Assembly: GCA_021613535.1 (NCBI GenBank)
Contig: CP075496.1
Coordinates: forward strand, 7,254,001 to 7,318,000
Origin: Adineta vaga
Lineage: Eukaryota; Animalia; Rotifera
Reading direction: 5' to 3'
DNA length: 64,000 nt
Positions 699 through 43,586 of the stretch are shown one piece after another. Each line of letters begins with the position of its first letter. The stretch's first letter is position 1. A program made the position numbers and the translations under genes. Below the pieces are notes generated by a model. The model was not told where the DNA came from and did not search any database. It saw only the letters and a program-made list of their open reading frames with translations.

Positions 699-1691
699 AT
701 GGCTAATGTAAACGATACTATCACAACTCTCCTCAATCTTGATCAACTTATATCTAAATATTGTCTTGGTCTATCATTAACTCTAGGTATAGTTAGTATT
801 ACATTCAATACAATTATATTTACAAGAAAAACATTTCATAATACGTCCTGTATTCTATATCTTTTATCATCAACAATTGCTAATTATCCAATTGTTTTGT
901 TCGTTATTCCATGTCGTTTGTTAGCTGATGGATTTCACATTGATCCTACACAAACCAGTCTAATTTTTTGTAAATTTCGTGAATATACTCTAACAGTTTC
1001 ACGATCTCTTTCAGCTTGGTTTATTGTTCTTGCTTCCTTCGATCGATTAATGTCAACTTCACGACAAGTTTACTATCGACAATTTGCTCATGTTCGTATT
1101 GCTCGTTATACGATCGTTGGAACGACACTATTCGGTCTACTCTTCTATCTACCTATACCAATACTTTTTTCAATTCATATTCAAAATGATCAATGTGAAG
1201 CACCAACCAATACATATCGAATAACCAATGCATTTTTATATTCAATTTGTTATGTAATTATTCCCAGTATATTCATGTTATTATTCGGTTTATCAACAGT
1301 AAATAATGGTAAACGACAACGACGTATTGCTCCTATAACATCATCCTTAAATGCAATCAAACGTGATCGAAATTTATTTCTAATGATTTTTTTTCAAACA
1401 ATACTTTTCACATGTACAACATTACCACATGGTGGATTTAAAATTTACACTACAATAACTTATGACGATATGAATTATGATGTCTATCAAACTGTATTGA
1501 CAGCATTTCTTACTCATCTAGCACGAATAGTATCATTTATCAATCATTCGTGTCAATTTTATATATTTACATTGAGTTCAAAATTATTTCGAGAAGAATT
1601 AAGAAAATTTCTCTATCAAGTAGTTGGTATTCGATATAAGCGTCATCAACAACAAGTTACAGTTCTTAGAATTGAGAATCATGAACATTAA
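699..1691 (+). CDS. Rhodopsin-like (class A) G protein-coupled receptor, intronless
   Basis: 330-aa ORF with seven hydrophobic segments. TM3 reads FCKFREY...SAWFIVLASFDRL (DRY-like DRL). ECL2 has a Cys. TM7 reads NHSCQFYIFTLSSKLFREEL (degenerate NPxxY plus helix-8 FR). Confidence 0.9.
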   Translation: MANVNDTITTLLNLDQLISKYCLGLSLTLGIVSITFNTIIFTRKTFHNTSCILYLLSSTIANYPIVLFVIPCRLLADGFHIDPTQTSLIFCKFREYTLTVSRSLSAWFIVLASFDRLMSTSRQVYYRQFAHVRIARYTIVGTTLFGLLFYLPIPILFSIHIQNDQCEAPTNTYRITNAFLYSICYVIIPSIFMLLFGLSTVNNGKRQRRIAPITSSLNAIKRDRNLFLMIFFQTILFTCTTLPHGGFKIYTTITYDDMNYDVYQTVLTAFLTHLARIVSFINHSCQFYIFTLSSKLFREELRKFLYQVVGIRYKRHQQQVTVLRIENHEH

Positions 1692-4600
1692 ATCTATTCA
1701 ATTATTTTCTGCTATTTACGATTGATATTGATATAGTTTTATTATTTTTCAAGAATTCTATTCATATCGATGACGGGAAATAGCTTTTCGACTTCATGAA
1801 AATATATATTATCTATGAAGTGTCTTTCTTTATATGTAGTAGTATATACAATATTTCATTTTAATGTCAGATTGTGCCTTGCCTGTTCATTCCGTGGACT
1901 GTTTATGGAATGATTAACTTTTTAATGTTAAACAATAAAGAATAGATGATGTTGCATGTAACGGAACTTCTTCTAAGTTTTCATTAAATTAAAAGCTGAT
2001 AATTAGTATAATAGAGGAGTACGACATTTTTTTAAACTTGAAATTGCAGATATGTGTTGAATGATGATAGAGTGAGTAGTTCTTTGTAAACTTCGAAAAA
2101 TGATGTTTGGAATACACGAAGACTAATTACCTCTGTTCCTATCTTTATACAGTTTGATCATGAATCGTAAATAAAGTATTAATATAATAACCAGTCCAAT
2201 ACCGTAGAGACAATGTATCTTCAAGAGTCTCATTTATTACAAATCAATTTTCATTTGACTTATGTTTATGTATAATTTGACCGTGAAACGACATAGCCAT
2301 TTGTCATGAAATGAATATTGTTGGTCATGAATCGCTTGTTACGTTTAGAAGTTCCATTTATTATGTATTTCTTTTTCCTTCGGGTTTCTTTTTTGATAGA
2401 TAGCTAGTGTTAATCGACATCGACAAGATACAACAAATGAGAAAAGAAGATGTTGATGAGAATCTATCGATCTAGCATTGTTCATATCAATGTCACTCTC
2501 GATTTGTCATCAAACACTGTCTAATCTAAAACAGAAATGTGTATGGCTCATTAGAAATCATTTACAATCTACAGATTGCCGATTGTAATGTATCATGACC
2601 GAGATTTCTTTTCTTTTACCGTTGTATAATTGATCCTATTGTTAATTTCTTCCATTATATTCATTATTATGATTACATCGGCATGTATATATTCAAGGTT
2701 ATCATAGCTCAATCAAATCAATGAATAAAAGACGATGATGCTTGGACGAAAGGTCGACCGATCTCAGTGTGATCTAAGGGCTAGCTGATGTGAATATCTT
2801 GAATGAATATAATAGTTGGATAATAATAATTTATCAATATAAAGATATTTTCAAAAAATAACAAAAGAAAATATGTGTGACATTCTTGAACAAGACAAGA
2901 ATTTGTTTATATTATAAGAAAGAATGTAAAATGGAGAAACTTAGAAAAGTATTTCTTCTTTGTATTGATTGTGAATATGTGAAAATCATTTACTGAAGGC
3001 GTAAACTAATCCTATGATAACAATAAATACATAGTATTTATTCAAAATATGAATAAACATACAATGACCTATCAATTCTCTGTCTGGTTGTTCAGCTGCG
3101 TGTTGATAAATAGTTATGTACATATAATGTAACGATCATTTTTTGTATATTTGTTACGAGCAAAGGAAAAAAAACTAAAGATTACGTCAATTTATGAATA
3201 CTATTTCTCTTAGATAGTTCAATAATAGAGTTACTCGTTTACTTTCTTTCGTCTTACCGATCTGTATACGTCTAATCCGTATGATTCATGGACATTGTGG
3301 TACAATGGCAATTGTCACCTGCTGTTTTGATCATTGTATAGGTCTAAGAGAGCAGATGTGCAAGCCTATGTCAATAAATCATTCTGTCGATTTTCTTCTC
3401 TCTGTTGTACATATCCGTATACATACATAGTCTCATCACATTGATTGTCAACTTTTCATGTACGTATAGATGCTGTGTATGTTCCTTTTCTTTTTTGCTC
3501 GTCATCAATATCTAATCAACACAACATGTTGTTCTTTGTCCTACTTCTCTGATACACAGACGATGATCACATTTCATGTTGTTCTGATGAGATCATTTTC
3601 TATCTCGTAGTACTATTCTTAACAAAGAATATTGCTGTTTATCCTTTACTCAGTCATTTATTTGTTCGTCTGTTTGTTCGATAGCTCTTTGCGGTTTCTC
3701 ACGCATTCGTGTTGTCTATATTTTTATTATTCACGATCACAGAATTGAGTAAAGAAGATGAAGAAACGAAGCAAAGAAGAAAAAAAGAAAGAACAAACCG
3801 CAGACTGAAAAACTCCGCTAAAGAACTTTCTGTGGTATTTTTCTTTCTGTTTTTTTTCTTTTTTCTTCCCCTTTTCCCGTTTACTCGTTCATTTATTTGG
3901 TCACGCTCACTCTTTGCATCTCGGGTTTTCTCTCCTTCTCATTGCTAACCACGCACGCTCTCATACATAGACACACACACATGTCTCACTGTTGTTCATT
4001 GAATTTTCATAATGATAGTAAAGGTAGTTTTCTGAGAAGAGAAGAAAGAAAATGACATTGAAAAAGAAAAGATCGCTGTAAATACTATCTCTAGGGAACC
4101 ATTTGTAGCTTTTCTTTCTCAGACAGAAGAATAGTGAAATCGACGCAAATAACATTAAATTTTTTTTGTTCTTTGAAAGAAAACCAGAATGTGCTTTTAA
4201 TACAGTTGCTTGTGCATCAGCTGTTTTGATTATTCCGATAAAACCGACAATACTACTTAGCATTCTATATCAGAAAAAAAACGATTACTTCAAGGAATAC
4301 ATCTGAAGTCTTAAAAAGAAAAGATAGATTACTTCGTTACTTTATACAACAACATCCTCTACATATCGGTAAGATATATTATATTCTTATATATTCATAT
4401 AGATTAGATCAATATCCAACGAATAAAATGCTTTACAGACCCTGTTATCTGACATAAACATCATTGTTTTAGTTTGTCTTTCGTTATCTTTTTTGCGTGG
4501 TATATAACTTGTTAGAATGCAATTAAGAGAAGAAAAGGAAAGTATTTATTTGATAATGACGTTATGAAATACTTCTATAAAACTCAGAACCTCTTGTTTT

Positions 4601-6118
4601 TTCAAACAGCTGACAAAAAGAAAGAGAGAGAGAGAGAAAGTAAGAAATGAAAAATAAGTTTATTATTTATGGTGGTTTTTTCTCATCGACACTCTTCAAT
4701 TCTTTTTTCTGTTCTTTATTTGTAGCAATAATACTATTTTAAGATGATGATATAAAAGATCTCATGGCTGTATGGAGCTAAATGTTAGCGATTTTCTCGT
4801 CATTTGTTTGCCTCATTATTATCATCATCAACAGTAACTATAGACTGAATTCATTGATGACAATATCGTCACGTGCAAATAGAAGGATATTTATGTATGT
4901 TTTCACTGTTGTCAAAGTGTCTATATGACAAGTTCTTCCTATCTCTCTCTCTCTTTGTTTTTCTTTTTCTTTTTCTCTTCTCTAATTTTGACCATACTTG
5001 GACGATTACACGGAGTACTAGATGTCTTTTGTTGCTTACTGTTTATGCAGACTGTAAATAGAGAGACAGCTCTTGTCCTTCACATTTTTCTTCTTCGTTG
5101 ATCATGCACACTGTGACTTATGTCCTTGAAGATCAAAAAGAATCAGAGAGACAGTGAGAAAAAGAAAAATGAGAGATACGCATATGGGTATATTTGTTGG
5201 ATTGTAAAACATTAGATGTATTGTGATTATTATAGAAACAAAGCTACTGATAATCCGGAAGGTATATGTATAATATAGAACCGAGTTGATGTGTATCTGA
5301 CGACAACAACAACGACAGACAATAAGTAATAGGCGAAAAGAGAACAGATGATGCCAGAAATGTGAAGAGAAGAAATGACTAGAATGGCAAAAAAGAATGC
5401 CGAAACATAAATCGTGTCTTTTTCCTCTCTTCCTCTTCTCCTTCGATATTCCCATTTCTCATTTTATGGGACACAAAAATACACACACACAGACACACAC
5501 ACATATACATGTTTGCGAGAAGTGAACCATGATGCATATATGGAAGTGCATGTCTGATTAACTCGCGTATGTTATTAAGATCAACGATAGACCATTTTTT
5601 AGGAATCATATAGTCTCTCGTAACAAATTTACATCACTATTATCAGTCGATAAATGTCATTAACGAAAGTTTTTTTTTTCTATTCATTTCGTTACTCGAA
5701 GAAGTGTCAGTACCTGTCAATAGATCACGTTACGTTCTTCCTTTTGACGTCTTTATCTATGATCGTTTAGGAAAAAAAAAGAAGAAAATTAATCGAAGAT
5801 TAGATTGATCAATATAAACAAAAAAAAGAAATGAAAGAAAAAAAGGAACGAAAGAAAAATCGACCCGAGAAGAAAAGACGTGAATAAATGAAGGTTATAC
5901 TACAGGAAAAAATGACTCGTACACGTACAAGTTTAGATTCATTTCAATCAAAAATAACTTTTTCGTTGATTGATTTTTATATCTATTCTTTTATGATTAT
6001 GTTTTCTCTATTGACATAGATATACTTATTTCAAATCAATAAGATGGTAACAGATGATCAATAAAATCAATCGATTTTTTATCTTGAACATTGACAATCG
6101 AATTTCTACGAAATAAAT

Positions 6119-17081: not shown

Positions 17082-17498
17082 TTAAGAACGAAACATACCT
17101 TGGCAGAATGATAACGACACAAAACATACAAGTAATTATTGGTTGAAATGAAACAAAATTACTCTGCATAATAAATAGGTGTACAGAATACAAACATTTC
17201 TTTTTTTATTATGGATTCAGAACTATAATCATACGTAGTGTTGTAATTGTTTTTCATGTCATTTGTAAATTTATTGAAGGAATAAATGACAAAATAGCGA
17301 TTCAAAACTGAATGGTTTGATTTATAAGCGGAATTTGTTTTGCATAAAACATAAGAGAGCGTATACTAATATTAAAAAAGCGACAGAGAAATAATCACGG
17401 GGTCTAGAAAAGAAGAAGAAAGAAAAAATACTGCTAAAGTACTAATGTAAATAGAAGATTAGAATAGATAGATAGATTATTCATTGAAAAATACTGTT

Positions 17499-20400
17499 TT
17501 AAAATATGTTATTCGAAAGCCAATTAGTATCAAATGAAGCTATTTGTTCAATTCGTTCATTGTCAGAAAGAAGATGAACATTTGTTTCATCGACATGAGT
17601 CAATGACTCAATCAATTCTAAAAAAATAACAATAGATTAGAAAGTAATGCTCTGTGCAAAAATATCTTATTCATTTTTATAATCACACTACTTACCATCA
17701 AATGTCCATAATATTGAATTATCCGCATTGATTTCTCTTGTTGCATTCAATTTATTACTTGTTTCTTCAAAATTTCGTACTTGTAATAAACGAAGCACAA
17801 GGGTAATTCTTTAATATGAAAAATCAGTGATTTATAAAGAAAAATAAAAGTTTGAATGATCATACTGTTCTTGCGTAAGTAATCCAGTTCGATCGGTATC
17901 TAGAATCTCAAACCATCGTTTAAGATCAATCTTTGTACAATATCCACTGTTAACAATCGGTAAAAATGTGTCACGAAATTCAATCCAATTTATCGAAGAA
18001 ACTAAATAAAACAAATTAAAATATAGAACAAAAAATAATTGATTGATCTAGATCAAACCAGTCTGTTGTTTTTTATTGAGAAATAATTGAATAAATCGTT
18101 GTAAATCAGTATTAGAAATATTAATATTATGATTAATAAATTCATTTGTAATTTTTATAGTTAAATCTTCATCATTACTATTCAATTCTTTCTTATCGGA
18201 ATTAGCACCAACATTTTTGAATATTTGACCAAGTACTATCATATTGAAATGAAAGCATTCGTCTTCAATTAGATCATCTCTTACTTGATATTTCTTGAGT
18301 AAATTTTTCATCAGGTTTTGTCGAAAAATTGATTACAGGTACTTCTAATATAATCGTTTGATTTTCTGTTGGTGATTGATTAAACCATTGTTGATTCTCT
18401 GTTTCTTTCGATAAGACATTTTCATTGATATCATCAGTTGTTTTGATTGCTTCGATTAATTCTATTCAAAGAAAAAGATCTATTTTGCGAAACAACAATT
18501 TCTTTTTTGTCTATTACCATCAGCACTCAATTTTCCATCATGATCTGTATCGTATTTATCAACGATAATTTGTGCAAGATGAATTGTATCATTCGCTTGT
18601 AGAACTTCAAGTAATTCTAAATCAAAATCTTTCTTGTTTTAATTATTGGAGAAAGAACAATGAGAGTTTACCGGCAATTTCTTGAACAGATAAATGACCA
18701 TCTCCACTAATATCGAAGAGATCAAATAATTTTCGAATGTGTTGTTCCGTATAACGACCGGATACCATTGGAAAAAGAATATCACGAAATTCAATCCAAT
18801 CGAGTGTTGCTAGACGATCTTTACAAAAAGAAAAGAAACAATATATTTATTTATGAATCAGAGAGAGAGAAGAAAATAGAATTATTAGATACTTACGTTT
18901 TTGTGCAGATGCTTCTACCAGATATTTTCGGAATAAACTATCGAATAATGTTCGAATTAATTGATCACGAAATTCAAGGCGATCAAGTAATTTATCTGGT
19001 AAATCATTATCTATTTCTACGACATCTTCATTGTTAGCTAATTCATGAAATACATAACGAAGTTCTAAAATATTATAAAAAAAATTATGTATGCTCTCTC
19101 TCTCTCTCTCGGCTGGCAATATTAACCTTGAACGATGACGGCTAATTTTGGATCATCATAATTATCAGTTCGATTTTCAGAAGTTGTTGCATCCACTTTG
19201 AACACAAAAATATTTTTATTATTGTATCAATAGTAATGTCAATATTATGTTACCTTCGACATCAGTTAATGAAGAATCATCAGATGATTGTTTACTAGTA
19301 TCTTGTAAAGGAAAAGAATGAGTTTCAAGTAAATGATCGTCACTGGTTTTGGTTGAGGAATGATAATCAATACGATCATCCTCCTCTGTTCTATCAATAA
19401 GAGAAGAATGACTGTCTCCTTCTCTTTTTGTTTGATTAGATGATTCAATTTGCGATAATTCAGATTTATTGTCCTGAGTTAATAAATTTGTATCTGATTG
19501 AGAAAGACTTTGTTTTCTTTCTTCTTGTGACGCATTATATAAGTTAAATGATGAGGATCGTGATCCTTTCATATCAGTATCTAGAGATACTTCATATTCT
19601 TCATGTGAAGACTGTTCAGGAGTAGAAGTAGAAGAGCGATGTTCACTGTGATCTGGATGACTATTTAATCGTTCATCACTCACAGGTAATGTTCTTTCTT
19701 CATGTTCAATATTATCATCTCTTTCATTATTCAGTTGAATGGATTGATCGACAACATGTTGCAATTCATGTCCTCGAAGAAATACAAAGAAATACATTTA
19801 CTAATGGGGCAAACTCATGTAAAAACCTAATAGTTACCTTCAACAGTCGAGGGTGAACCGTCTGTATCAGAAGAACTTTGAACTTCAGGCGATGCTTCAG
19901 GATCTGTTGGTGAAGGTAACATTGATTGAAGGACATCAGAAGTTAGCGGTTGATCTTGTGTCATGGCAGGTGCAGTTGCTGAAGTAATTGAACGTTGAAA
20001 ATCAGATGACAATATTGAGTCTATGGAAGCTTTGCGAGACGTGGACTGATGTTCTGAAGTAGAACCTGATGGTGGTTGTTGTTCTGGACTTATCGTAGCG
20101 TTTGTTGTCGATAGACGTCTTTGAGCATCAGTTGACACTGCCGAGCCTGTTGAAGATGTTCGCGATCGTGGAGGATGTTCAAAAACTGTTGAAGAATTAA
20201 CTACAGAAGAACGTCTTCTGTTTTCAGATGGTTCCAATGAAGTTGTCGAAGATTTACGTGATGTAAATTGATGTTCATATGAAGAAGATATAGGTTGTTC
20301 TTCTTCTACATTGGTTTGAGTTGTACTCAATGTTACACCATCATTTACTGACGATTTACGGGATGATGGTTGATTTTCTAAGACCGTTGAAGTATGTCCT

Positions 20401-23400
20401 ACGGAAGGTCGTCTTGACGCATCAGGTGTTATTGATGAGCTTACTGAAGACGTATGTGTTGAGGAGTGAGGTTCATTGGTTGAAGTTGGTAATTGCTGAT
20501 CTGGGACTATGGGAATAGAACTTGTCGAAGTACGTCTCTGACCATCTGATTGTACCACCGAATCAATCGATGATTTCCGTGATGCAGACGGTTCCTGTTC
20601 TGAAGTTGCAGATGTTATAGTTGAAACTGTTTCTTTATGTATATCAGGTAATGTTTCTGAAGCTACGGATGATTTACGTGACGAAGATTGATATTCTTGC
20701 GAAGGTAATGCTGGCAATTGACGAACATCAGATATTGTTGGTTGTTGTTGTTGCTGCTGCTCGGAACTTATTGTGACACCAGATGCAGAAATACGTCTTT
20801 GAGTATTGGATGATATGTCTGAGCTTACTGATGATGTTCGCGTGGACGGTAGTTGTTCAGATTGTAGTTGAAATGTTTATGGTAGAAGGACGTCGTTGAG
20901 TATCAGATGGTTGTTGTTCATCAGCTGTGGAAATATGTACCACAGAAGAACGCTTCTGATCACTAGATGGTAATGTTGAATCAACTGAAGACTTACGAGA
21001 TGGTGACAAATGTTCTTGCATAGAAGGTGATAATGGTTGAGTAACATCTGCAACTGGCGAGCTATCTGATGTAGAAACACGTCTTTGAACATCAACCGAT
21101 ACTCCTGAACCCACAGATGCAGAACGCGATGAGGGTTGATGTTCTCCTGACGAAGATGAAGATGACTGTTCAACATGAGAACTAGATGTTTGTTGTTCCG
21201 GAAATAGTGAAACATCATCAGTCACAGGAACTTGTCGTTGAACATCAGATATTCCAGACGAATGGAGTGATGATTTGCGTGATGATGGTTGACGTTCTTC
21301 AGAAGAATCTAATGGTGTTTGACGCGTGTCAGCAGCTGCTGATTGTTGCTCTGAGTCTACTGAAACACCAGCTGTAGAAGGACGTCTGTAATGACTACTT
21401 GACGTTGACGATCTACGTGAAGAAGATGATGATGGTTGTTGTTGTTGTTGTTGTTCTACAATCGGTGACGTATTGATAGTAGATGAACGTCGTTGATTAT
21501 CAGATGAAGCTACTGCACTTGTTGAAGATTTACGTGATGATGACTGATGTTCATCTGAAGGCGTTGAAGGTGATTGGTGCGCATCAATTTCTGACTTTTG
21601 TTGCTCTGGAATAGCTGTAACACTGCTGGTAGACAGATGCCTTTGAACATCAGATGGAACAGTTGAGCTTACAGAAGATGTACGAGAGGATGGTGGATGT
21701 TCTTGAGCAGTTGAAGGACGTCGCTGACTATCAGATATATTTAATGTTATTTGCTCTGAATCAGTAGATGTTTGCTTTCCTTGTGGTATTGTCTTGTCTG
21801 CTTCTAATATTGGAATAGATGGCAGACTAGTTGGCGTTGATTGAAGTTCAGGTGTTGTCACAGGTGATCGTTGAAGTTGAGAAGTTTCGGATTGTTCTTC
21901 TCGTGATAACAGAAGAGCGGGAGAGGTCGATGAAGTAGGTGATTGTCGTATTGCAGTACTTGTTGAAGAAGTTCGTGATGATAATTGTTGCGCTTCAGTT
22001 ACTGAAGACGAATGATCTTCTTCTGTAAAATTAGATGCAGATACATTTGAAGTTTTCTCATTGTTTTGAGAAAAATCAATGTCACTTGTTACAATTTGCT
22101 GTTGACCATATAAATTATTTTGCACAGTAGGTGATAATCCAATCGAATAAATATTATTTGTTTGAATATTATTATCTTCACTAAGTAAATCAAAGTTTGA
22201 TTGAACAATTTGTGCAACTGTAAGATTCTTCAAAAAATAGAAAAGATTTTTTGTGAAATTTTCAATATTGATTCTTATTTCGTACCTCATCTTGTTGTTG
22301 ATCATTCAATTTACTTTGATTTGTATTATTTGCCGACCATACTGTTCTATCTGTATAAATCAATATTTTTTGTTCGAAGAAAGAAAAAAAATAACAAAAA
22401 GTTTAACTTAATTTATTGTACTAAACCACGTTTATCATCTAATTGGCTTCTTTCATTCTCTAGCCTTCAGATCGAACAAATACAGAAGTCTCACACATAT
22501 GTCTATGCTAAATTGCATTTCAGTGCAAATAATAATTGTCTTCTATACATAAGCACACAGACACACATACAATATGTAGGAATCGAAATGAAAAAAAGAA
22601 AAGGTAGCATTAAAAAAACGCACGCAATGATGGTTGTTACAAAATTTGTCAAACTCAACTATTTGTTCAAATAATGAAAGTTAATTGTGTTGAGTGCTTC
22701 TATATTTATTCAGTCAAATTTCTGGTCTCACCTGTCAATGTATTACTGTTGCTTCGTAATGATGTTGGTCTCATTAAATGTGTTATACTACTCGTAGATT
22801 GTTTTCGTCGATATTCGCTTTCTAAAACACCACGATAAAGTGTCAATTCAAATTTTAAATTTCGATCATATTCAGCTAGATGATTTAATTTGTCTTTCAA
22901 GGTTTGCAATTCTAATTTGCTACATTCTAATTCATTATCTTTCGTTGTTAATTGTTGTCGACGTTCATCACGTAATGAAAAGAATTCAGCTTCCTATGAA
23001 AACAGAAAAACAAATTTTATTTTTAAAAGTTATATCAATTTGAATTATTTTCATACCATAGCTTGCACACGTTCAATTAACGTTTGATTATGATCGTTGA
23101 GTGTTGTTAATTCTTGTAAGACAGTTTGATGTTCATCATGAAGTTGTTCATAACCTTCCTGGTTGGAAGATTGATGAAATGTATTGGTTTCATTTGTTTG
23201 TACACTTTCTTCAAGTATCTGTAACATTTGTTTATATTCATTGTCCATTTGTTTCAATTGTGTTTGATTTAAATCATTGAAATCTTGTCGAATACGATTG
23301 ATTGATTCACTTAAACGTGATAGAAGATATTCATTTGCTTCGGCTTGTGTTTCAAGAATTGTTTCACGTTCTTCATCAAGAAATTCTTTAGTTGTTTGCA

Positions 23401-24064
23401 TTAATTTAACTTCTTCTTTTAATGTTTGAATTTCAAACTAAATAAGGAAAAGGATATCAATGAAAAATCAATTAATTCCCGTTAATCTTACTTCTGTTTT
23501 CGATCGTTCAATACAAATTCGTTCTAATTGTATCTGTAAATTGTCAACTTTATCCATTGCTTGTTGATAATTTTGTTTTTCATTATCAACATAAACTAAT
23601 AAAGTTTGAATCTGTTGATTTAATTTATTGAATTCATTTCGAACGATTCGTTCTTGTTTTTGTAATGCATTCAATCGTTTCACTTGTTCTTTCTCATTAC
23701 TAGCAACAAAATGAATTCGTCGTTTAAGTTCATCTCGTTCTTTTAAATACCGTTTGGCTCGAGTTTTTGATTGATAACGTTCGAGATGAGCTTCATTTAA
23801 TGTTTGACTTTGTTCACGAAAATCATTTGGTAAACGTTTCAAATGATTTTCTAATGCTGAAATATATTCTTTTCGTATTTGCTCAATATGTTCTTGTAAT
23901 TGTCGGTTTTCACCATCCATGGTTTTCATATCATTAAGATATGTTTGAAGATTGGTATTGAGAGTTCGAAATTCTTCAGTTTGAATATTATATGACTGAC
24001 GAGATTGTTCAGCACGATTAACAACATCATCAATAAATTGATCATCGTCAAATAAACTAAACAT
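17499..24064 (-). CDS. Giant IF-rod protein with Ser/Thr-rich repeat tail and C-terminal EF-hand modules (~1800 aa, ~16 exons; one frameshift near 20860)
   Basis: Rod start motif LNTNLQTYLNDMKTMDGEN, coil-1B end EIQTLKEE, rod end LKFELTLYRGVLESEYRR. A strong phase-1 donor (G|GTGAGA, 22731) joins in frame via exons 22459-22427 and 22350-22286 to the repeat exon starting at 22227. EF loops DISGDGHLSVQE, DTDHDGKLSADE and DTDRTGLLTQEQ. Stop TAA ends at 17499. Confidence 0.7.
19900..22000 (-). repeat. Degenerate protein-level repeat, about 15 units of the type EHQPSSR[K/T]SS(V)xSxxxSDxQRRxS
   Basis: Recurring SSRKSS/SRTSS motifs, often paired with SDxQRRxS, in both ORFs (20857-22305 and 19827-20717) and across the frameshift between them. 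Confidence 0.8.
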
Positions 24065-40512: not shown

Positions 40513-43500
40513 TTATTGAAATTTTTGATTGAATAAAGCTTTTTCTTCGCCATTAACATCGACAAGTCGTGTAACCATTGTTGTACCTGTACCCCATGTT
40601 GGAACACCTTCAGCGACTAATGTTTCCTTTTCATTGACCGATCCTTTACTAGCATTACGACTTAAAATACGTACTCGAGAACGAGATTTAAGAACGAAAT
40701 TTTCAGGAAATTTATAAACAATGTCTTCTTTCGAATCAATTTTACGTCGTAATGTCCAACCTTTCAAATCTTGATCTTTGCCTGGTGAACCGGCATTCTC
40801 AATGACGATAAAGTTACCCTGAGGATCTACTTGATCGATAGCAACAGGACCTAAATAAAGAAAAAAAACAATATCAATATCAATCTAAAGATCATTTTAT
40901 TTTCGTGTTCAAATTCAACGTTGTTTTTTTTTCATGTCAACTATAAAAGAATAAAAACTTTCAAAATAAGCACACGTTTGTTTCTTTTTTGTCATCCATT
41001 TGGATGAGTGCTTGTTGAAAGAAAAACGAATGTTACATCAATCAACGATAAACACACATGACTAAATCGATTGATATATTTTTGTTTTTGGTTATGTGAT
41101 ATAAAAGTAATTATAAGCAAAAATAAAACACATCAGTGAACTAAAAAACGTAAATTTTAACAGCAGAAACCTCAATTGTTTTTTTGAATCCAACACGCAA
41201 ACAGCAAATTAATTATAAATTAAAAAAGAAAAACGACATGTCCACATCTATATTTCATACGGAAAGGAGAAGAATGTCTCAATACATGTGTGTATGTGTG
41301 TGTTTTTCCTGTCAGTGGTCTAAATGAAAGAATGAAACATGCAGTCATGATTAGCCTGAAAAGAATTGAATAGTATAATAAATATATTTTTGAATTTCGA
41401 AAATAAAAATTGAATTTTAATTGCTCGATAAAAGTTATTAGTTTTCTTTTTTTGTTTCTTTGTCAAATTGATTTGAATAGATACAATTATTAATCATCAA
41501 ACCAGAGAAATAAGATGTGAAGTTTCGATATATACTATATGCTAAAACATATGTTGTAATTATAACCGTCCATCTGTGACTAATCGTGTGTAATGAGATA
41601 GATAGATGCTTGTCATAGCTACGAAAAAGGGGCAATTGGCCGATGGGAATGATGAGAAGAAAAAAACAAAATGTCTCATCATCATCATCATCATTATTAT
41701 GATGATGATGATGATTATTATTATTATTGAACGAATGGGAGAACAGACAGTCAACAATAGAAAAAAGATAGTTAAATGATCAAATGAATAACATTTGTCC
41801 TGCACATTGCTGTATTTCATACCAAAAAGAAAAATCAAAGAAACATGCTGCTTTGTAAGATTGTTATGATTACTCTGACTACTTACAGCAACATTCATAG
41901 AATTAAAGATTTATCATAGAAGAAAGAAGAATAAAGAAATACGAAAAGAAAATGATGTTTCTGTATGTTTTTTTTTGTTTTCACTAACGATCAAAAATGA
42001 TATTCTAGATAAGATGAAAAATATGATTTTTGATAAAACTCACAAAGAAAATTTCAAATAAAACACTAACCTCGTGCCGATTTTTGTACGGTCATTTTCT
42101 TGGTTGAAACATCGGCAGCTGCTGGATCAAATCGACCGGCGGTATTTCCACTAACAGACGATCCTGATTGAAAATGATATGCTGGTGCACCCTTACCACC
42201 TGCCATTAAACCTTCTCCACTTTCGATTCTTTGTAAATGACCTTCTTCGACTTCCAATAAACGTCTATATGTATTGATTTCAAATCGAAGTGAAACATTA
42301 TTTTCCAAAACAGCAGCAATAGCTTGTTCACGTTGTTCAGCTTGACCACGTAATTCAGCTAATTCTCGGTCTCGTTCATTGTGTGCTCGATTATGTTCAG
42401 CAGAAATTCGTTCAAAACTTTCTTCTAATTCTCGAAGTTCATTGGCCAAATCTGAATGTTCTTTTTGCAATTTATCATAATTACCGCGATTTTCCGATAA
42501 TAACGATTTCAATGCTGATAAATCCATGATTTCAACGGCGCCTGTACGACGAGCTTCTTCAATCTTACGTTTTTGTTCTGCTGCTTGTTCACGAATTTCT
42601 TCGGTTTTAATTCGATAATATTCTGTGAAGAAAGAAAAAAACAAGAATTGAACCAGCTGTTTTATATTTACTCATTTCATACCTTCTAATTCCCGTCGTT
42701 GTGCTTGTGAAAGTGCTTCGAAATCATTCTTTATATCAGCAATGGCACGTGTTAATTCAGTTCGATAGAATTGACTAACATCGATTGGTAATGTACCAAG
42801 AGAAGCTAATTCATTACGTTCTTCTTCATGAACTGCTTTCATAAAAGCTAATTGTTCTTCTAAAGTTTGTAATTCATTTTGTATCATAACACGTTGCATA
42901 GATTCTTGATCAAATTCATTTTTTAAATCTTCTAATTGAGCTAAAAGACGTCGAACTTCATCTTTACTACGATCAATTTCTTGTTTTTTATCTTCAAAAC
43001 GATTACGTAAAGAATCTAATTCTGATCCACTGCCTTCGAGTTGTTGTTTAAGCATTGTAAAACGATTACGATCAAGATTAACTAATTCATTAGCAAAATC
43101 TGTTTGATGTTTTATTAACGATGCATCATATTCAGCACGTTTAGCACGTAATTCTGCTAAAGCTTTATCACGTGTAACATCATCGATTTGTTTTCGTAAG
43201 GAAACAAGTCCTTGATCATATTGATCTTTTACTTTACCAGAATCAAAACCTGTCAAAAAAAAAGAAAAAAATAAAGATTTCCTTTAGAGAGAAAAAGGAA
43301 ACAAAATTTTTTCGATTTTTGCCTTACCCCATTTTTGTTTGAGTGAATCAAGTTCAGTTTGTAATTTTCGATTTTGAGTTTCAAGAAACTTAACACGATC
43401 AAGATAAGCACCAAATTTTGTATTAAGTTCTTGCATTTCAAGTCGTTCACCTTCATGTTGATTTGCTAACTTACGAACAGCTTCGAGACCACCAGCACGA

Positions 43501-43586
43501 CCACCAGCTGGACCATCACTAGTTCGAATTCCACGTTCAATTATTGTTCGACGAATAACCGTTTGATCACCACGTTCTGTAGCCAT
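40513..43586 (-). CDS. Cytoplasmic intermediate filament protein with lamin-tail (Ig-fold) domain, protostome type (4 exons)
   Basis: LNTKFGAYLDRVKFLETQNRKL; SLRFEINTYRRLLEVEE; LTD GPVAIDQVDPQGNFIVIEN...LKGWTLRRKID...WGTG. No CaaX box (ends NQKFQ). Confidence 0.92.

Follow-up and report, generated by a model that had tools for sequence, protein, structure and literature searches.

A bdelloid rotifer gene predicted to join an intermediate-filament rod to a long repeat tail and two EF-hand lobes

Results

A fifteen-exon gene on record as a hypothetical protein

The stretch of DNA analysed here, called the window below, comprises 64,000 nucleotides of the genome of the bdelloid rotifer Adineta vaga (assembly GCA_021613535.1, contig CP075496.1, positions 7,254,001 to 7,318,000); positions are counted from its first letter. 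This AT-rich window lies on a 15.2-Mb contig, one of the six that make up the 100.8-Mb genome. At 24064-17500, on the minus strand, it carries a gene that very probably encodes, as one polypeptide, a rod of the intermediate filament (IF) type, a long repeat tail and two EF-hand lobes (the rod-EF protein below). The gene is already on record in GenBank (I4U23_019309, 1776 amino acids; model P0030 below), where its product is called a "hypothetical protein". An original prediction, drawn from the letters of the window, had described an apparent chimera of just these parts in an architecture that it did not recognise, and we likewise met no description of this architecture, nor of any IF protein with EF-hands in rotifers, in the literature searched.

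The gene comprises 15 exons, and all of their borders are GT/AG (Table 1). Whole-protein analyses were run on P0030, while the exons themselves were checked one at a time; each of the 15 was found in P0030 in the expected order and phase. When the residues that P0030 skips are added to its 1776, the intact product has a length of about 1,797 residues. Guanine-plus-cytosine content is 0.40-0.42 across the Ser/Thr-rich exon 5, as against about 0.28 in its surroundings.

Table 1. Exons, introns and other elements of the rod-EF gene (positions in the window, written in the direction of transcription)
Feature	Position	Strand	Content and basis
Exon 1	24064-23492	-	ATG at 24064; 28-residue acidic head and start of the rod, coil 1A motif LNTNLQTYLNDMK; P0030 residues 1-191; GT donor
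Intron 1	23491-23438	-	P0030 and GT/AG borders; outside the stretch compared with RNA
Exon 2	23437-23057	-	Middle of the rod; P0030 residues 192-318
Intron 2	23056-22994	-	RNA joint in runs X2 and X3
Exon 3	22993-22732	-	End of the rod, invariant AEYDRNLKFELTLYRGVLESEYRRK, first tail residues; ends in phase 1 at CAG|GTGAGA
Long intron	22731-22351	-	381 nt; putative splice
Exon 4	22350-22286	-	65 nt, phase 1-0; peptide DRTVWSANNTNQSKLNDQQQDE; RNA joint 22286>22227 (run X3)
Exon 5	22227-19838	-	Ser/Thr/Gln/Pro-rich repeat tail; one surplus assembly base at 20862
Exon 6	19772-19254	-	Acidic, His/Ser-rich end of the tail; P0030 residues 1204-1375; RNA joints 19837>19771 and 19254>19195
Exons 7-11	19195-19127, 19064-18897, 18818-18672, 18616-18518, 18461-18285	-	First four-EF-hand lobe; all four introns seen as RNA joints
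Exons 12-15	18235-18059, 18001-17866, 17808-17696, 17617-17500	-	Second four-EF-hand lobe, mostly degenerate; RNA joints 17866>17808 and 17696>17617
Introns	18284-18236 and 18058-18002	-	P0030 and GT/AG borders alone
Stop codon TAA	17502-17500	-	End of exon 15

RNA contigs show the splicing of the tail and EF exons

Four sequencing runs behave as RNA, in that they yield contigs with minus-strand GT..AG joints, and these were compared with positions 17480-23470. The contigs show 10 of the 14 introns, and 8 of the 10 among the downstream ones. In the rod and tail the joints are 23056>22992, 22286>22227, 19837>19771 and 19254>19195; in the EF region they are 19127>19064, 18897>18818, 18672>18616, 18518>18461, 17866>17808 and 17696>17617. 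It follows from these joints that the tail and EF exons are spliced as originally proposed, along a series of exons that leads to the EF-hands and in which every junction is in phase.

A frameshift had been noted near 20860, and the assembly does contain it. Base 20862 is absent from an RNA contig covering 20712-20906, and once it is left out exon 5 is stop-free over 796 codons. The GenBank model bypasses the frameshift stop by treating about 20826-20891 as an intron, which is why it falls 22 residues short; the RNA contig shows no such intron. The same contig carries two A>G differences near 20862, which suggest that it comes from the other haplotype, or that the assembly is in error at this base.

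The architecture is conserved among bdelloids in two ohnologous copies

A search of relatives for the same domain combination, one of the checks proposed with the original prediction, returned fused models of 1,150-1,600 amino acids in A. ricciae, A. steineri, five Rotaria and Didymodactylos. The succession of IF-type rod, Ser/Thr repeat tail and two EF modules is conserved in Adineta, Rotaria and Didymodactylos, which are all the bdelloid genera found, and occurs in two ohnologous copies. That two copies have been kept since an ancient genome duplication, in every bdelloid genus found, argues that they are under selection. When exon 1 was scanned exhaustively with HMMER against 1.84 billion representative sequences, only 18 relatives were returned, and all those that could be traced are bdelloid.

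The A. vaga ohnolog is GenBank I4U23_001860 (1332 amino acids), on chromosome 1 (C1:5856000-5865999, positions 1275-6076, plus strand). Its exon 1 is 58% identical to that of the window copy and the order of rod, tail and EF exons is the same; its tail is shorter and acidic, and an intron of about 55 nt replaces the 381-nt intron and the extra exon. Word depth is greater in the RNA contigs that match the ohnolog than in those that match the window copy.

In one uncultured bdelloid (contig L007, 8001-9242) the whole rod is a single 413-codon frame. This contig and a second one (L030) show that introns of the gene have been lost in some uncultured bdelloids. L007 also carries E2 (UQ_con) genes upstream, as does the window.

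The rod and the tail are predicted to be joined by splicing from 22732 to 22350

In the original prediction the open frame that ends at 22706 reads past a strong donor into an intron. We find exactly this: the frame of exon 3 passes CAG|GTGAGA (last exon base 22732, GT at 22731-22730) and ends at a TAA at 22708-22706. Being in phase 1, the donor is compatible with the acceptor at 22351/22350. Exon 4 had been proposed as well, and one RNA contig shows that the exon ending at 22286 precedes the Ser/Thr exon. This joint, 22286>22227, fixes the reading frame. Upstream, the frame contains no ATG before a stop TAA at 22405; downstream, the first Met of the same tail frame comes only about 430 codons later. 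An exon further upstream must accordingly carry the coding sequence into this frame, through 22351/22350.

Related sequences point to exon 3 as that upstream exon. The exon-4 peptide and its phase are kept directly after the rod end in the Rotaria orthologs and in a second Adineta, and the whole layout (exon 3, an intron of about 350-380 nt, an exon of 65-66 nt, a short intron, the tail) is retained in Rotaria sp. Silwood2 and the second Adineta. The chromosome-1 ohnolog joins its rod to the tail frame through a phase-0 intron of about 55 nt, and an RNA contig of this copy extends at least 236 nt past ..RRKQ, beyond the stop within the intron and into the tail. In the second uncultured bdelloid contig (L030, 4477-5961) rod exon 3 and the whole tail form one intronless open frame of 494 codons. 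From the frame, the conservation of exon 4, the ohnolog join and this fused frame we infer the splice from 22732 to 22350.

Two other elements proposed for this region were rejected. The original prediction had placed an optional 33-nt exon at 22459-22427; in another Adineta (L011) and in a Rotaria (L004) it contains in-frame stops at the same place, its AG acceptor is missing in Rotaria, and the GenBank model does not include it. An ATG at 22498, considered as an independent start for the tail, is not conserved.

The N-terminal rod is a divergent member of the IF superfamily

By sequence comparison, the rod is a divergent IF-superfamily member of lamin length, homologous from end to end to the rods of canonical protostome IFs. 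This assignment is drawn from profile matches, an hhalign alignment, equality of length and the two rod end motifs. A profile built from 15 bdelloid rods matches, among 5.8 billion sequences, a canonical IF of Didymodactylos carnosus (P0080; expectation value, E, 4e-11) that itself has a Filament domain at 149 bits and a lamin tail domain. In hhalign the rod, residues 29-382, is aligned with residues 47-400 of P0080 at 97.65% probability (E 2.6e-12); its 354 residues are a lamin-type length and equal the rod of P0080. At the start of coil 1A, LNTNLQTYLNDMKTMDGENRQLQ stands against LNHKFANYLDRVKFLEQQNHKLQ, and at the end of coil 2B NLKFELTLYRGVLESEY stands against SLRFEINTYRRLLEVEE, both motifs being near-invariant across the 15 bdelloid sequences. 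TYRRLLEVEE, a motif of a canonical IF, has its aligned counterpart in the end-of-rod motif of exon 3. Within A. vaga the rod profile matches the neighbouring IF gene and 10 of 17 other IF loci tested, down to 1e-13.

The three rod exons, searched singly, returned no Pfam Filament match; a piecewise search of this kind is limited, which accounts for the result, and the full-length models did align. The lamin tail domain (PF00932), whose absence agrees with the original prediction, was not found in P0030 or its orthologs by Pfam scan. The protein ends in ..NWLSNNIF, a C-terminus that differs from the bdelloid lamin ending given in PMC10125929; bdelloid lamins end differently and retain the lamin tail domain (PMC10125929). 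Structure prediction of two copies of the rod (P0030 residues 25-385) as a homodimer gave a score of 0.02, which speaks neither for nor against binding.

A Ser/Thr-rich tail of degenerate repeats

The tail spans P0030 residues 406-1385, about 980 residues with 24% Ser, 10% Thr and 9.5% Gln. It is built of some 15 degenerate units of about 45 residues each, of the form E-[HQ]-Q-P-S-S-R-K-S-S ... S-D-x-Q-R-R-x-S-T, with paired motifs of basic-kinase type, SSRKSS and QRRxST. R-[RK]-x-[ST] occurs 21 times in the whole protein, 20 of them in the tail, and [ST]-P occurs 20 times in the whole protein; KSP repeats were not found in a motif count of the whole protein. Rotaria retains the repeat frame EQQPS ... 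SD[IV]QR without the basic residues, so the term "phospho-repeat", suggested by the 21 R-[RK]-x-[ST] motifs, is used here at the level of motifs.

Two EF-hand lobes that arose by internal duplication

The C-terminal EF-hand modules and their duplication, both part of the original prediction, were recovered. The Pfam pair model EF-hand_7 (PF13499) matches P0030 residues 1479-1542 at 50.9 bits, with a cut-off of 30, and a profile made from the C-terminal 400 residues finds, in the PDB, the C-lobes of calmodulin, troponin C, calcineurin B and centrin at about 1e-11. An AlphaFold model of the region (predicted local distance difference test, pLDDT, 77) consists of two helical lobes of about eight helices each, at model residues 15-190 and 215-400, with a disordered linker between them. 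The best Foldseek matches of this model are calmodulin, calaxin, hippocalcin, CHP2 and calcineurin B, all of them weak (E about 1.5e-3, TM-score 0.4-0.48). Lobe 2 aligns with lobe 1 by BLASTP at E 6e-13, with 27% identity over 161 residues, and on this similarity we take the two lobes to have arisen through internal duplication.

Two canonical 12-residue Ca2+ loops, acidic at position 12, were recognised: DISGDGHLSVQE in exon 9 and DTDHDGKLSADE in exon 10. Both lie in lobe 1 and are conserved in both ohnolog types. Together with the EF-hand pair above the Pfam cut-off they lead us to predict that the protein senses calcium. A profile search with the EF module returned only bdelloid fragments, with no standalone relative outside the family and no donor gene, and a protein atlas search with the EF region returned generic EF-hand clusters only.

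The 381-nt intron is conserved nearly as well as the exons

The putative intron that separates rod from tail, single copy in the A. vaga genome, has about seven times the length usual for introns here. Between Adineta and Rotaria its identity is 60-77% in 10 of 12 segment-by-species comparisons and 48% in the other two, both of the middle segment; the short introns of the gene are only 40-57% identical between the two genera, and the long one is nearly as conserved as exons. Reading through the donor gives a frame of exactly 8 codons in six of six species, with its TAA inside the invariant block AATAAATA, 27 nt past the end of the exon. Further invariant blocks in the six-species alignment include GTGAGACTTCTGTATTTGTT. 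A second AATAAA lies near 22418, followed by a T-rich run to 22380, and these are kept in five of the six species.

An Rfam search of 22200-22800 found no family and gave a single chance-level match (E 0.54). RNAalifold predicts helices in which the stretch that follows the 5' splice site pairs with the 3' splice-site region, with one covarying pair and a covariation term of about 0, and single-sequence folding energies of five sequences were no better than those of shuffles (z -0.25 to -1.6). One possible reading of this conserved intron is an isoform switch.

Alternative explanations

We are highly confident that 24064-17500 is a single gene for an IF rod, a long repeat tail and two EF-hand lobes. 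Several observations nevertheless weigh against this reading or parts of it. The Filament family (PF00038) aligns end to end but scores 18.6 bits in P0030 and 17-30 bits in orthologs, under the cut-off of 40; of the Pfam matches looked for at the outset, the EF-hand pair was confirmed and Filament fell short. PDB sequence searches with the single rod and with the rod profile gave nothing useful. The head is short and acidic (net charge about -4 in P0030) and, as the IF heads needed for assembly are basic, this argues against autonomous assembly and for a role in co-assembly or as a linker. Six of the eight EF loops are degenerate and not canonical, and in Rotaria the tail motifs lack their basic residues. 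The assembled haplotype is frameshifted at 20862, with a stop at 20859-20857. No contig of the four RNA runs covers 22333-22798, so the joint 22732>22350 is neither shown nor refuted, and the stop with an invariant AATAAA 27 nt past the donor, present in six of six species, means that a rod-only message may be produced as well, or in place of the long one. That the N-terminal part might be a generic coiled coil, and the protein a coiled-coil EF-hand scaffold unrelated to filaments, would suit the sub-threshold whole-rod scores, the lack of Filament matches for single exons and the empty PDB profile search, as well as the label "chromosome segregation ATPase" that the Joint Genome Institute gives to relatives; we find it barely credible in view of the end-to-end 354-residue alignment at 97.65% probability, the presence of both IF end motifs, and the profile matches to many canonical A. 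vaga IF genes (to 1e-13) and to the lamin-tail IF at 4e-11. We give just as little credence to the window copy being a dying pseudogene. The stop in the assembly and the artificial intron that the GenBank model needs would agree with decay; the RNA contig without the extra base does not, more than 900 downstream codons are intact and spliced in RNA, and the two nearby A>G differences suggest another haplotype or an assembly error.

The remaining alternatives concern the long intron. If the locus held two genes, a rod-only gene would end at 22706 and a tail/EF gene would start within 22700-22350, the candidate start being the ATG at 22498-22496; in A. vaga the T|GTGAGA after it can join 22350 in frame. 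A stop and AATAAA directly after the donor would suit such an arrangement, as would the joint 22732>22350 being unseen in RNA contigs, in a region that they leave uncovered. However, the ATG is destroyed in four of four Rotaria, where the letters are ATAT|GTGAGA, exon 4 lacks an ATG and keeps a conserved phase match to the exon 3 donor, the ohnolog has only about 55 nt between rod and tail, another bdelloid has rod exon 3 and tail in one open frame, and all complete annotated orthologs are fused; two genes are accordingly very improbable. A single gene with two isoforms deserves more weight, and we regard it as possible, if on the unlikely side. Intronic cleavage and polyadenylation would here give a tailless rod of 413 residues (405 plus 8 read-through) and splicing would give the EF form, an arrangement that is compatible with our best explanation for the long form and that can be likened to lamin A/C and to the squid neurofilament gene. 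It would account for the 8-codon read-through with its TAA inside AATAAATA in six species, for the second AATAAA and T-rich run at 22418-22380 in five of them, and for an identity between genera of 60-77% (10 of 12 comparisons) where short introns reach 40-57%; the ohnolog has only a short ordinary intron. Against it, conservation spans about 350 nt, beyond what a poly(A) site needs, and at the peptide level the 8 read-through residues show no conservation. The contigs of the four RNA runs leave the intron and the final 150 nt of exon 3 uncovered, which speaks neither way.

Comparison with known filament and EF-hand proteins

Canonical protostome IFs and lamins, which combine PF00038 with PF00932 (P0080 and the gene at 40513-43586 of the window are examples), resemble the rod-EF protein in the 354-residue rod and in both end motifs (LN..L..Y...K and LYRGVLESE). 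The rod-EF protein differs from them in scoring below the Pfam cut-off, in its short acidic head, in having no lamin tail domain, nuclear localisation signal or CaaX box, and in a tail made of about 980 residues of repeats and two EF-hand lobes. Its plan of a rod with a long tail is shared with the long-tailed IFs. In neurofilament M and H, nestin, synemin and squid NF-220 the IF rod likewise leads into a tail that is very long, of low complexity and rich in phosphorylatable residues, and that would extend outward from the filament; in squid alternative RNA processing adds the long tail to a lamin-like rod. The tails show no sequence relation, however, and the motifs of the rod-EF protein are SSRKSS and QRRxST, not KSP. 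To our knowledge none of these long-tailed proteins ends in EF-hands, as the original prediction had also remarked.

C-terminal EF lobes on a long rod protein are found in alpha-actinin, alpha-spectrin and dystonin/MACF, whose rods are made of spectrin repeats; the rod of the present protein is an IF coiled coil, and it carries two four-EF-hand lobes with only two canonical loops. The four-EF-hand sensors calmodulin, calcineurin B, NCS/hippocalcin and calaxin match the EF pair and, weakly, the predicted fold of the lobes. EF-hands and long repeats also meet in one polypeptide in S100-fused-type proteins such as profilaggrin and trichohyalin, which work with keratin IFs; these have an N-terminal S100 EF pair and no IF rod. 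In the rod-EF protein the order is reversed and the rod lies within the protein itself.

A possible calcium-responsive filament side-arm

If the parts act as their likenesses suggest, the rod would dimerise and join or decorate an IF network, perhaps together with the product of the canonical IF gene that lies about 18 kb upstream and scores best among the rod's relatives. The disordered tail may project as a side-arm, like the tails of neurofilament M and H. Ca2+ bound at lobe 1 would change what the EF lobes at the tip of the tail bind, and phosphorylation of the repeats could tune spacing or binding. We put forward this functional part, a filament side-arm under Ca2+ and phosphorylation control, as a tentative reading that falls somewhat short of probable. 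Taken as a whole, a single gene with the proposed function is our best explanation of the locus, and one that we hold with moderate confidence.

IFs are usually viewed as passive and as regulated externally, by kinases and Ca2+-binding partners; if the proposal is true, a 1,000-residue side-arm ending in EF lobes would amount to a Ca2+ sensor built into the filament. Bdelloids withstand drying and contract into a tun, and the inner layer of their syncytial skin is filamentous, which makes the rod-EF protein a concrete candidate for the biology of the tun, of desiccation and of skin filaments. One may go further and imagine a Ca2+-switchable bdelloid IF system, in which a duplicate of the neighbouring canonical IF gene lost its lamin tail domain and gained a phosphorylatable, EF-tipped side-arm, the lobes cross-link or release filaments as Ca2+ rises, for instance on contraction into the desiccation-resistant tun, and the 381-nt intron is a regulated switch that sets the ratio of tailless to EF-tailed forms through intronic polyadenylation or a long-range RNA fold. 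This fuller scheme is speculative and we consider it quite unlikely. A conserved long intron in a genome with introns of about 55 nt may also show how such genomes handle or exploit long introns.

The neighbouring IF gene and the origin of the rod-EF gene

A canonical IF gene lies at 40513-43586 of the window, on the minus strand like the rod-EF gene and about 18 kb upstream of it. Each of its three rod exons scores above the Pfam Filament cut-off, and its last exon is lamin-tail-like. Its ohnolog, C1:5834200-5836500, stands about 22 kb upstream of the chromosome-1 rod-EF copy. Among 18 canonical A. vaga IF loci these two score best against the family profile, in a ranking by profile score with small margins between loci. 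These positions and scores hint that the neighbouring IF gene may have been duplicated in tandem, earlier than the bdelloid genome duplication, and that the rod-EF gene arose from one of the copies when its tail was replaced. The intron positions of the rod-EF gene differ from those of its neighbour.

Exons 4-13 start in phase 1 and exons 5-12 are symmetric (1-1), while the rod exons are in phase 0. Such a pattern fits an addition of the tail and EF modules through exon shuffling. The gene would also illustrate tail replacement in IF evolution cleanly, with the likely parent gene close by, and as such is of interest for the evolution of the cytoskeleton.

The IF repertoire of A. vaga is large for a small genome. 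The Filament profile finds at least 20 separate loci above its cut-off, and several of them stand in tandem clusters, for example at C2:5.509-5.520 Mb and C5:12.173-12.181 Mb.

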